A DNA stretch of 64,000 nucleotides, from positions 156,259 through 220,258 of the forward strand of contig NW_005434593.1 in NCBI RefSeq assembly GCF_000315625.1, given 5' to 3'. The translations under genes and the position numbers were made by a program. The notes beneath the pieces are model-generated. The model was not told the DNA's origin, made no database searches, and saw nothing but the letters and a program-made list of their open reading frames with translations. This stretch comes from Guillardia theta CCMP2712 (lineage: Eukaryota; Protista; Cryptophyta). Within the stretch, counting starts at the first letter, position 1. Each line of letters opens with the position of its first letter. Shown here in pieces: positions 31,692-47,292 of this stretch.

Positions 31692-34600
31692 TCATTCGAA
31701 CATGCTCTGGAAGCGAACATGCGCGTTGACATCTTTCTTCATCTTCTTCGCCCTGTCAACGTCCTCCTCGCTGAGGTGCGTCCTTCCTGCCGCTGGGATC
31801 CACTCGCCGTACCGCAGGATCGCCTTGATCTGGACGAGGGTGAGGGGATGATCGCATCCAGCACTGCAGCTTACCTCGCTCTCCTCCTCCCTCCCTACAC
31901 CCTTCGCATCCTTCCTTCCATTCTCCTCCTCCTCGTCTTCAGACAGCCTCTTGCCTCCCTCCTCCTCCTCCTTCCTCTCCTCCTTCTTCTCCTCCTCCCT
32001 CCTCTCCGACCCTCCTGCCCTTGCAAGGCTCCTGAAGTCCCTCCCCCTGTTCGCATGCTCCATCACTGCAAGCTGCCACCGCACCACAGGAACTCGCTGC
32101 TCCCTGCGTGACGTCAGCTCCCGCTGCTCCCTCTCAACGTCCATCAGGTCGAGAGTCACTCCTGTCTCCACCAGCACAGTAGCTACGACGTCGTTGACCG
32201 GCGTGTTGCGCAGAAACTTCCTCCTGCTCAGCTCGCGGTGGAGGTGGNNNNNNNNNNNNNNNNNNNNNNNNNNNNNNNNNNNNNNNNNNNNNNNNNNNNN
32301 NNNNNNNNNNNNNNNNNNNNNNNNNNNNNNNNNNNNNNNNNNNNNNNAAGCAGGAGCAGGAAAAAGGAGTAGGAGAGGGGGAGGGGAGAGGCAGAGGAGG
32401 AGGAGGAGGAGGAGGAGGAGGCGAAGGAAGAGGAGGAGGAGGAGGAGGAGGAGGCGAAGGAAGAGGAGGAGGAGGAGGAGGAGGAGGCAAACTGGGTATC
32501 TTCAACTTCTCATACTCAGGACTGACTCACTTTGGATCCGAGAGCCGGACTGGCGACTTTGTTGAGGTTGCGATGAACTTGATTGACAACCAGCCGATGA
32601 AGAAGACGATCAGAACTAGAACAGTGTAGCTCTGAAACAGACTGTGAGGACCTTAAAAACGCCTGCTGCTGCTGCTGCTGCTGCTGCTGCTGCTGCTGCT
32701 GCTGCTGCTGCTGCTGCTGCTGCTGCTGCTGCTGCTGCTGCTGCTGCTGCTGCTGCTGCTGCTGCTGCTGCTGCTGCTGCTGCTGCTGCTGTTCCCTCCC
32801 CTCTGCTGTGCTTCCTCCCGCTCCTCCTCCTCACAAGCATCCTCCTCTTCAATCCATTCTTTCGCATCATCATGATAAACATCTCCATTCCCTCCTTTCC
32901 TCCCCTGCAGGTTGGTACAGATCCTCCTCCTGCTCCTCCTGCTCCTGCTCCTTCACCTGAGTCTTGTCGACAACGTACTTTCTGAGCGGCGGCCATGCGG
33001 TGATAAGGCAGGAGGCGAAGACCCCAAGAAAGAAAACGATCCAACCGGCAAAGAAACCACTGATCTGACTTCCAACAAACGCTGCTGCTCTTGTTGGCTT
33101 CGGGGGATCTCTACAGATATGAAGATGAGGATAAGGATCAGGAGATAGAACAGGAAGAGGAATGGAATGAGGAGGCAGAATGCGGGAGCAGGAGCAGGAG
33201 CAGGAGCAGGAAAAAGGAGTAGGAGCAGGAGCAGGAGCAGGAGCAGGAGCAGGAGCAGAAGCCGAGGCAGGAGCAGGAGCAGGAGCAGGAGCAGGAGCAG
33301 GAGCAGGAGCAGGAGCAGGAGCAGGAGCAGGAGCAGGAGCAGGAGCAAGGGGGGGGGGGATATCTTGGCTCGTACATTTGATCAGCTATTCCTCCTCTCC
33401 TCGCAGCAAAGACGTCTCGACGATATCCGTTCATCAGCCCCACGGCTGGAGGTTCGAGTCAGGCGGACGAGGACGATGGTGAAAGCGAGGAGAGAGAGAG
33501 GGGAAGACATGAAGAAGCGGGAAAGAAGACGAGAATGAGGATGAGAACGATGACGAGGTAGTGACGAGCCCAACGGGCAGGGGTAGCGAAAATCACAAGG
33601 AGCAGGAGCAGGAGCAGGAGCAGGAGCAGGAGCAGGAGCAGGAGCAGGAGGGCAGGAGATTGTTACCCGACAACAAGGTCAGGACGAAGGAGAGAAAGAC
33701 TGAAGTCGCCATGCTGGAAGGGTCGAAGTTGGTGAGTAGGAGCTGATACCTGGAGGACTTACCTGTACTTGACGGAAGAGATCAGGGTTGAGACAAGAGT
33801 CTTGCTAGACCATTTCAAGTTGTCAGGTTTCTGTTTGTTGAGATTCAGATGTAGAATCGCCATGATAGTCTCATGTTTGTTCTACCATCAGATCGTTTTG
33901 CAGGAATTGGGATAAGATCCATTGGGAACTGTTGTCCAGAGAGAAGGCCCTGGAGGGGTGTCAGGTTGATGTCATGAAATCATCTTGAAAACCTCAGGTT
34001 GAACTCTCTCAGCAAACAGACGAAAGATAATCGGGAGGCTGTTGAAGAGCGCGTGATGTTGAAGGTACAAACACATGTGATCACCTGGATCTTCATTGAT
34101 GCTCCTGATGAATGCAAACGATCGGACCTGACTTGTTGTGAGGAGACTACATGTAATATCATCGTCATTGTACTCACCACAGCTTTTGTTGTCTGACATC
34201 TGTCGTTGCGAGGGGTAATGTACCCGATCTGACCGGAGGAAATGTTGCTCACCTGTCCATGGCCACGTCTCATACTCATCTCCTCCTCCTCCCCTCGTCC
34301 TCCTCCTCCTCCTCGTCCTCCTCCTCGTCCATCTCCTGCTCCTCAACTCCTTCTCCACCTCCTCCTGCTCCTGCTCCTGTCCTGCTCCTCCCTGCTGCTG
34401 CTGCTGCTGCTGCTGCTGCTGCTGCTGTTCCTCCTCCTCCTCCTCGCCTTCCTCACCTCTGGCAGAATTTCTCGATCTGCGATTCCAAAAGGCAGAACTC
34501 CAGCCCAGACCTGACGAGAAAGAGTCATACAGGAGAAGGCCTGAACAAGGAGGAGAGCGTTGGAGTGTTGGTGGTGGTAAGCAGGAGCAGGAGAAGTAGG

Positions 34601-46600: not shown

Positions 46601-47292
46601 AGCTGACTTGCCATGGGTGTGTTGGACAGCAGGACGTCCGGCGCAGAGTTCATTGATCGCAGGAAGTTGGTCGTGGTAGTCATAGAGAGCAACACAGAGG
46701 TGTTGAGGAAAACACGGTCTGAGCAAGAAGCATCCGGACAGTATTCAAGGAAGATCTCAACAACCACCATCCCTGGGACCGCGCGCGTGAAGGAAAGAAG
46801 TGCAAACGTTCCGATCCCGTCGTCATCTGTGCTCACCAGGTTTCCTTCCAGCTCAAACTTGCAGAGCTCTGCGTGTCGGAGGGACTCGATCGTCCCCGCT
46901 ACGTGTGCGGATTCGGCACAGAAAGCGAAGGAATGATCGGGGCTCCAGCTGCTGACTCTCGCTTGCAGAGCTTGCCCGCTGATCGGGTAAGAGACGTTGT
47001 TGCGCACATAGACCTTGATGGGCTGTTTCATCGCCTTGCCCAGCACCATGCTGTTCGCCGCAGGGATGTTGAACACTTGCAGTGAGGCTGGAACTTTGTT
47101 CTTGCTGGGAACCTCTGCAAAGTTCATGGACCCTGGGATGTACAACTGAGTCAACATGATAGGAATGAGCATGAAGATCGCTCCGGAGACAAGTCGAGAA
47201 TAGACATGATCGCTTGCAAGGTCGACGACTTTCATCGCCCTTGGCGGTGGTTCAGACCAAAGTTCCTTTGCTCGTGATAGATTCAATCTCAC
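31692..47292 (-). CDS. Giant multi-exon membrane protein: N-terminal hydrophobic anchor, many bacterial-type Ig-like repeats, C-terminal STRA6-like multipass domain (exon map incomplete, spans 4 gaps)
   Basis: Recurrent motif TDDDGIGTF / SDQHGIARF / SDKDGVARF / TDDEGIATF; VxVxD motifs; C-terminal YRRDVFAARRG, FVGSQISGFFAGWIVFF, VRWQLAVMEHAN. Treating it as one gene is an inference. Confidence 0.65.
32663..32791. repeat. Intronic (CTG/CAG)~43 microsatellite
   Basis: Pure trinucleotide run. Confidence 0.95.
33185..33347. repeat. (GGAGCA)n hexamer microsatellite; same family at ~18295, 18985, 23325, 33600, 35905, 39140, 45870, 62815
   Basis: Directly visible. Confidence 0.95.
39840..39951. repeat. 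(ATC)n-(AAC)n compound microsatellite; (ATC)n also at ~36455, 37970, 39410, 43430, 44370
   Basis: Directly visible. Confidence 0.95.

Follow-up and report, generated by a model that had tools for sequence, protein, structure and literature searches.

Does a cryptophyte alga encode a giant surface protein that ends in a relative of STRA6, and would such a protein work as STRA6 does? In animals, where STRA6 has been studied, the protein takes up retinol from a carrier in the blood. The question is raised by 64,000 nucleotides of the Guillardia theta CCMP2712 genome (contig NW_005434593.1, positions 156,259 to 220,258; hereafter the window, with coordinates counted from its first base), where an original prediction, made from the DNA letters, had joined exons spread over 15 kb into one gene combining invasin/Big-like repeats with a STRA6-like membrane domain. 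Our analysis suggests that this locus is probably one gene, encoding a protein with a signal/anchor helix, a repeat ectodomain, a STRA6-related membrane domain and a tail helix like the CaMBP2 helix of STRA6, which would act by a STRA6-like mechanism.

The minus strand carries a multi-exon gene that starts with an ATG at 47235 and ends with a stop codon at 31692-31694. Translated from stop to stop, this strand shows consecutive open segments between 47310 and 31695, in which protein-to-DNA alignments resolve ~27 coding segments; at least 27 are spread across the 15.5 kb from 47235 to 31692, and the encoded protein has ~2,500 residues. The introns between them number at least 26, and many consist of microsatellite-like repeats over hundreds of bases; the composition of the window is eukaryotic (~45-60% GC, with microsatellite-filled introns). 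A codon-usage score trained on the other genes of the window selects the same segments as the open-frame chain, and adds short helix-coding exons at ~33754 and ~32640 that lists of open reading frames (ORFs) missed. Hydropathy places hydrophobic helices at 47193-47143 (signal/anchor), ~37491-37441, 35428-35311, 33715-33665, 33052-33002 and 32622-32572. Single window exons, database proteins or fetched loci served as the search queries.

Homologs hold these segments together. The protein P0004 is located on a 9.5-kb metagenome scaffold (L004), where its gene is almost intron-free, and tblastx of L004 against the window returns ~40 high-scoring segment pairs (HSPs) in strict order, from L004 310 (window 47235) to L004 8339 (window 32966). 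Both genes share the start MxVxDLASD, followed by a hydrophobic helix. At the other end, the spliced JGI proteins P0011, P0012 and P0033 run unbroken from a cytoplasmic loop via the helices to the tail, matching window exons 35428-35254, 34213-33992, 33446-33393, 33112-32966 and 32243-32013. At the last helices, the splice sites follow the canonical pattern and keep the frame (..YVVDKTQ/GTGAAG and TTTCAG/AGC), and the matched segments contain no stops or frameshifts. The gene is also under purifying selection, with a ratio of nonsynonymous to synonymous substitution rates (dN/dS) of 0.22 over 341 codons of exon 40101-41363, compared with the 91%-identical relative L017. Given the collinearity with L004, the spliced homologs, the in-frame splice sites and this ratio, a single conserved gene is the best reading of the locus, and the proposal of one gene over 15 kb held: ectodomain and membrane segments are collinear with L004, and the spliced homologs attach the tail. 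In the order of transcription, its segments are as follows.

46063-47235, minus: first coding exon, with the ATG at 47235, the helix at 47193-47143 and then beta-rich units; start and helix align to the first ORF of L004, and residues 3-257 of P0004 align to the exon's 503-residue open frame (E 6e-37)
46804-46830, minus: copy 1 of the repeat motif (STDDDGIGTF), from a regular-expression scan
46369-46395, minus: copy 2 of the repeat motif (SDQHGIARF), from the same type of scan
45530-45619, minus: ectodomain exon; P0004 residues 255-284 at 53% identity, and L004 tblastx
45124-45273, minus: ectodomain exon with motif copy 3 (SDKDGVARF, 45142-45168); P0004 residues 291-340, and motif scan
44829-44957, minus: ectodomain exon; P0004 residues 333-375, and L004 tblastx
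43624-43944, minus: ectodomain exon; P0004 residues 468-566 (E 2e-16)
43051-43221, minus: probable ectodomain exon, with an open frame, coding-like codon use and a fitting position between matched exons; no significant homolog HSP
41978-42735, minus: ectodomain exon entering the gap at 41878-41977; P0004 residues 678-886 and P0003 residues 12-111 align
40101-41363, minus: largest ectodomain exon, a 421-residue open frame, identified by its relatives, dN/dS and ESM Atlas features
39634-39750, minus: ectodomain exon with motif copy 4 (TDDEGIATF, 39682-39708); P0003 and P0004 at 50% identity, and motif scan
39478-39603, minus: ectodomain exon in which the P0004 alignment continues (residues 1328-1399)
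37742-39085, minus: six short juxtamembrane ectodomain exons (39085-39041, 38988-38947, 38476-38384, 38140-38102, 37920-37870 and 37837-37742), whose HSPs to L004:5699-6049 and the P0003 C-terminus are collinear
37160-37687, minus: first membrane-region exons (37687-37637, 37530-37435, 37402-37316 and 37249-37160), from HSPs to L004:6273-6689, some of them weak, with a hydrophobic segment at ~37491-37441
35254-35428, minus: membrane helix and conserved LELSRPL segment; HSPs to P0011, P0012 and L004
33992-34213, minus: loop exons ending in SRLSFVCLLREFN; L004 at 87% identity over 16 residues, and P0012 residues 100-139
33650-33754, minus: membrane helix exon, from codon-use score and hydropathy; its position is that of the helix preceding the YR motif in P0033
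33393-33446, minus: YRRDVFAARRG segment; P0011 residues 305-322 at 67% identity
32966-33112, minus: membrane helix exon (GWIVFFLG..WPPLRKYVVD); P0011 residues 328-376 (E 3e-10) and P0007, with acceptor TGTAG and donor GTGAAG
32533-32640, minus: membrane helix exon with acceptor TTTCAG, in frame with the previous exon; hydropathy maximum 2.6
31695-32246, minus: cytoplasmic tail exon with the RWQLAVMEHAN helix at ~32078-32031, followed by the stop codon at 31692-31694; P0011 and P0012 (E about 1e-11) and P0007

The three motifs from which a STRA6-like domain had been proposed lie within these exons, YRRDVFAARRG at 33446-33393, AAFVGSQISGFFAGWIVFF within 33112-32966 and VVRWQLAVMEHAN at ~32078-32031, and they do follow one another in the same order as in STRA6.

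All four runs of N in the assembly interrupt this gene, and all four adjoin microsatellite-like repeats. Each coincides with homolog residues that have no window counterpart, with collinear flanks:

41878-41977: gap hiding ~14 codons of an exon end and the start of an intron; the exon frame runs into the Ns, and the ORF of L017 continues there
39217-39316: gap; in the protein-to-DNA alignment, ~85-100 residues of the homologs are unmatched on both sides
36352-36451: gap in the cytoplasmic-loop region, with ~45-100 homolog residues unaccounted for; P0011 residues 1-119 and L004:6755-7051 have no significant window counterpart
32248-32347: gap hiding ~100 residues, among them the last helices and RLD..FDPGH; P0011 residues ~406-507 are unmatched

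L017 spans the flanks of the first of these gaps in one contig (93% and 86% DNA identity): its bases 3-103 correspond to window 42078-41978 at 93%, and across the gap it has ~14 further codons and then an intron. Coding sequence (HLHRELS) resumes at the first base past the Ns of gap 32248-32347, and a genome search found no counterpart of P0011 residues ~406-507 in the window or in the rest of the genome. Across the gaps at 41878, 39217 and 36352, collinearity with the homologs suggests that the gene continues.

Whether a repeat ectodomain can be joined to such membrane helices is answered by another gene of this genome that has the same architecture (G000:C13:796500-803500, minus strand, locus L016; the C13 paralog). 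It comprises a 1364-residue ORF with TDxxGVA-type units, which ends in two hydrophobic helices and is joined in frame, by a canonical 50-nucleotide intron (GTAAGA..TTCAG), to a 553-residue ORF that matches the Pfam family RBP_receptor (PF14752); a further exon carries QRNRWQ at L016 419-348. Since the junction consists of reading frame and a single 50-nucleotide intron, the fusion of ectodomain and STRA6-like part is real, and together with the window gene the architecture occurs at least twice in this genome. The related protein P0034 holds ~960 ectodomain residues and STRA6-like helices in a single 1620-residue ORF, so that the join put forward by the original prediction is proven in both the C13 paralog and P0034. 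The ectodomains of the two paralog families cannot be aligned beyond the motif. Elsewhere in the genome, a 99-residue open frame at G000:C20:148556-148741 (minus strand, L007) gives a weak PF14752 match (16.8 bits, model positions 529-589); this match could come from the tail of a third STRA6-like gene or be due to chance.

Relatives of the window gene are few. With exon 40101-41363 as query, a full HMMER scan recovered only five among 1.84 billion representative proteins: P0001 (91% identical), P0002 (a protein of the cryptophyte Hanusia phi in EukProt, 59%), P0003, P0004 (1538 residues, 28%) and P0005. Scanning metagenome loci with the family alignment yielded no confirmed locus. Between relatives, identity is 28-31% in the ectodomain versus 40-66% in the membrane domain, and the best-conserved parts, with invariant columns, are the membrane helices and the juxtamembrane segment.

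Is this conserved part related to STRA6? The connection runs through the paralog family. A search of the whole genome (87.1 Mb, 669 contigs) with PF14752, whose gathering score is 25 bits, gives a significant match at the C13 paralog (31.9 bits; 29.9 bits for the 553-residue ORF), and P0008, a relative of that paralog, reaches 47.4 bits over model positions 456-603, to the model's very end. The C-terminal domain of the window family is in turn similar to that of the paralog family by BLASTP with compositional adjustment (E 1e-13, 28% over 181 residues), by six-frame search (E 1.7e-7) and by hhalign (96%, E 3.7e-9, 194 columns), with the columns YR, G.Q, W.P, RLD.P and FDPGH common to both. When the two families are combined in a joint profile, the only PDB match at E <=10 is zebrafish STRA6 (5sy1, residues 351-562, E 0.032); the alignment pairs RLD..FDPGY with RLD..FDPGH, and the YRRDVFAARRG segment is aligned by profile to LYRGDSLNV of the zebrafish protein. 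The juxtamembrane segment RLD..FDPG[YH], invariant in all homologs of the window gene, aligns to 5sy1. Independently, the ESM Atlas language-model features of P0033 rank PF14752 clusters first to third (score 0.92, 210/256 features, 19/30 matches). By hydropathy, 6-8 helices are counted, where STRA6 has nine transmembrane helices and an intramembrane one. The window gene itself falls below formal PF14752 membership, and its homology is significant by transitive and profile comparison; on these sequence comparisons we conclude with high confidence that the domain is homologous to the C-terminal part of STRA6.

The tail helix aligns between the two families and reads RWQLAVMEHAN in the window gene and RWHLLFTMDRNN in P0008, next to HWQLLYTLVNN of STRA6, which is part of the STRA6 CaMBP2 peptide (PMC7154012). 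By sequence it corresponds to CaMBP2, the main calmodulin-binding helix of STRA6, and the last motif had been likened to the right helix; by analogy, it may bind calmodulin.

The ectodomain comprises ~1,700 residues in beta-rich, diverged units of ~100 residues, several of which end in [ST][DN]xxG[IV]AxF. The slightly broader pattern [ST][DN]xxG[IVL][AG]x[FIV] occurs four times in any frame of the 64-kb window, always in the exons and frames of this gene, against 0.17 expected from shuffles. A hidden Markov model (HMM) of the last unit finds other units only at the motif (<=8.5 bits versus 4.3 for shuffles), and the claim of repeats therefore rests on the motif. The ten best family-bearing Atlas neighbours of exon 40101-41363 are all immunoglobulin (Ig)-like (SMCHD1-Ig, filamin, Big_1, Invasin_D3), with a score of 0.86. 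The macroglobulin domain MG4 (PF17789, cut-off 24.7 bits) matches below threshold in P0004 (23.0 bits, where P0004 corresponds to exon 40101-41363), P0034 (14.3) and P0002 (12.4 bits), and Big_1 (PF02369, cut-off 34.9 bits) does so in P0034 (21.9 bits). Big_1 has no match in the window exons, a six-frame search of the whole genome with its HMM has its best matches at other loci, and an ectodomain profile finds only chance cyclin matches in the PDB. An Ig-like fold is probable. As for the invasin/Big-like repeats originally described, the TDxxGxAxF-type motif is present four times in the exons of the gene, whereas assignment to Big_1 stays below threshold. The genome's best Big_1 match (24.7 bits, also below the cut-off) lies at G000:C88:92007-92222 on the plus strand, inside the 5844-residue open frame of another giant repeat protein.

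Several observations weigh against one STRA6-like gene product. The gene model is built from genomic DNA and homologs. PF14752 is unmatched even at E 10 in the window exons, the L004 pieces (among them its 428-residue membrane ORF) and P0003, P0004, P0006, P0007 and P0033; no Pfam family reaches its threshold in the window exons or the closest homologs, ten window exons give only noise at E 10, and NCBIfam gives no match. When the tail exon, the helix exon or the membrane ORF of L004 was searched against PDB sequences, 5sy1 was not among the matches; a profile restricted to the window family retrieves no PDB entry, and the joint profile matches 5sy1 weakly (16.7 bits). Only PF14752 positions ~400-603 are matched, also for members of the paralog family, and thus the N-terminal half of STRA6, with its first five helices and the loop that binds retinol-binding protein (RBP), has no detectable counterpart. 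The window's own copy of RLD..FDPGH is unseen, because it lies inside gap 32248-32347. An AlphaFold model of P0011 from a 10-row alignment has a predicted local distance difference test (pLDDT) score of 45, and Foldseek of this model against the PDB returned only noise; a model of exon 1 made without an alignment reaches pLDDT 39 and consists mostly of strands. The Ig fold draws on sub-threshold MG4 (23 bits) and Big_1 (21.9 bits) matches and the Atlas score of 0.86, and ligand, dimerisation and calmodulin binding are argued by analogy only. What was predicted of the membrane domain is thus upheld in part: homology emerges via the paralog family, the joint profile and the Atlas features, but without a direct PF14752 match and over the C-terminal third of the model, and the comparison with STRA6 by profile succeeded for the joint profile but not for the window-family profile.

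The main rival accepts the same protein and the same homology, without ligand transport: the ectodomain would be used to adhere to or sense prey, bacteria, mates or substrate, and the STRA6-like part would be just an anchor or a Ca2+/calmodulin-coupled signaling module. The ectodomain is indeed huge, built of repeats and fast-evolving relative to the membrane domain (28-31% versus 40-66% identity), as is typical of adhesins and surface receptors, and between the two paralog families it can be aligned at the motif only. Yet a plain anchor would not need its helices and juxtamembrane segment to be the best-conserved parts of the protein, and we consider this alternative unlikely. That the locus holds two neighboring genes, one for a secreted or anchored repeat protein (47235 to ~37700) and one for a STRA6-like membrane protein (~37700 to 31692), is very improbable. 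No uninterrupted ORF of the window family crosses from ectodomain to helices, P0004 and P0003 end in retained introns, two assembly gaps lie between the parts, and the locus is known from genomic DNA; however, both parts keep the same order and strand in the independent locus L004, the second gene would have no evident start codon or signal sequence, and in the paralog family the junction falls within one ORF.

The likeness to STRA6 might instead be a compositional similarity of hydrophobic helices, in which case the multi-pass domain would be lineage-specific. The missing direct Pfam and PDB matches of the window family, the weak PDB match of the mixed profile, and a weak match of the same helices to the unrelated membrane family SieB speak for this, but the matched motifs include non-hydrophobic ones in a fixed order (YR, W.P, RLD.P, FDPGH and a polar tail helix), the BLASTP comparison was compositionally adjusted, and the language-model search independently ranks PF14752 first, so that we give this explanation hardly any credence. 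Least credible of all is a decaying or misassembled pseudogene: although the locus has four gaps, its low-complexity introns are very long and homologous segments are missing, the matched segments are free of stops and frameshifts, dN/dS is 0.22, and every missing segment coincides with a run of N.

How, then, might a single-gene product with a STRA6-related domain work? STRA6 is a dimer with nine transmembrane helices and one intramembrane helix (PMC8006376, PMC7154012); its lipophilic cleft releases retinol into the bilayer, and calmodulin with Ca2+ favors export (PMC8006376). By analogy, the algal membrane domain would dimerize, its conserved helices and juxtamembrane segment forming a lipophilic, lipid-facing cleft for a hydrophobic ligand. 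Through this cleft a small hydrophobic molecule, perhaps a retinoid, a carotenoid derivative or some other lipid, might move between the bilayer and the outside, and Ca2+/calmodulin on the tail helix could set the direction or rate of transfer. The giant ectodomain would substitute for the soluble-carrier docking site of animal STRA6, and may bind a carrier, a particle or a cell surface.

Clear STRA6 relatives in a cryptophyte, with at least two paralogs and conservation in Hanusia phi and several uncultured relatives, would mean that the STRA6-type membrane mechanism arose before animal retinoid physiology or extends beyond it. The coupling of a STRA6-like domain to a built-in ectodomain of ~1,700 residues is a new pairing, and with this family the roles of the STRA6 cleft and calmodulin switch can be studied apart from the carrier protein RBP4; it also supplies a name for a set of giant 'hypothetical proteins'. 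Cryptophyte algae are rich in retinal-dependent rhodopsins. We offer, as a distinctly speculative and rather improbable extension, that STRA6-type transporters of lipophilic ligands predate animals and that cryptophytes use them as self-contained receptors, with a giant ectodomain in place of the soluble carrier, which could import or export retinoids or carotenoid derivatives under Ca2+/calmodulin control. If true, protists would have a route for retinoid traffic that has so far gone unrecognized. The full-text literature searched contained no description of non-animal STRA6 homologs or of this architecture; its coverage is incomplete, and this is hence not proof of novelty.

The gene lies among others in the window. 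On the plus strand, three consecutive open frames at 27042-31463 (Guanylate_cyc 79 bits, weak AAA_16, TPR repeats) encode a cyclase-ATPase-TPR protein that converges tail-to-tail on the 3' end of the gene, ~230 bases away. Directly upstream of the gene, three further plus-strand frames at 47710-50743 (241, 162 and 533 residues) match no Pfam family, with weak coiled-coil matches in the last only, and ~4 kb upstream of the gene start a 542-residue minus-strand frame at 51179-52804 encodes a polycystin-2-like cation channel (Polycystin_dom 43.6 bits, PKD_channel 70.3 bits). Two near-identical, ABC-transporter-like open frames of 610 residues lie inverted at 4778-6607 (minus) and 8487-10316 (plus).

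Among known systems, STRA6, the vertebrate receptor through which retinol is taken up, comes closest in the membrane domain. The C-terminal membrane region of the zebrafish protein (5sy1, residues 351-562) is homologous to that of the window family, and the two share a YR motif after a helix, the RLD..FDPG[HY] segment (seen in the homologs of the window gene) and a basic tail helix with W-Q-L; the topology of the window gene, with its N-terminus outside and C-terminus inside, is compatible with that of STRA6. They differ in that the window gene places a repeat ectodomain of ~1,700 residues before the membrane domain, where STRA6 has only a short N-terminus, and in that the host alga is without known RBP4. 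STRA6L/RBPR2, the second vertebrate RBP4 receptor, belongs to the same Pfam family and has a predicted similar membrane domain (PMC8006376); likened here by description only, it differs from the window gene in the same points as STRA6. The ectodomain resembles the Big_1 domains of invasin and intimin and the macroglobulin MG domains, which likewise form beta-rich units of ~100 residues ending in TDxxGxAxF and which the window-gene family matches below threshold; unlike in those families, no unit of the window gene reaches a family threshold, and its units recognize each other at the motif only. The whole architecture is met in the C13 paralog (C13:797100-802700) and its relatives P0008, P0009/P0034 and P0010, which like the window gene join a repeat ectodomain that bears TDxxGVA motifs to a STRA6-like domain, followed by a tail helix with QRNRW. 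Between the C13 paralog and the window family, the membrane domains share 28% identity (E 1e-13), and the paralog differs in passing the Pfam cut-off, below which the window gene stays, and in having few, short introns (one examined, of 50 nucleotides) in place of at least 26, many of them long.

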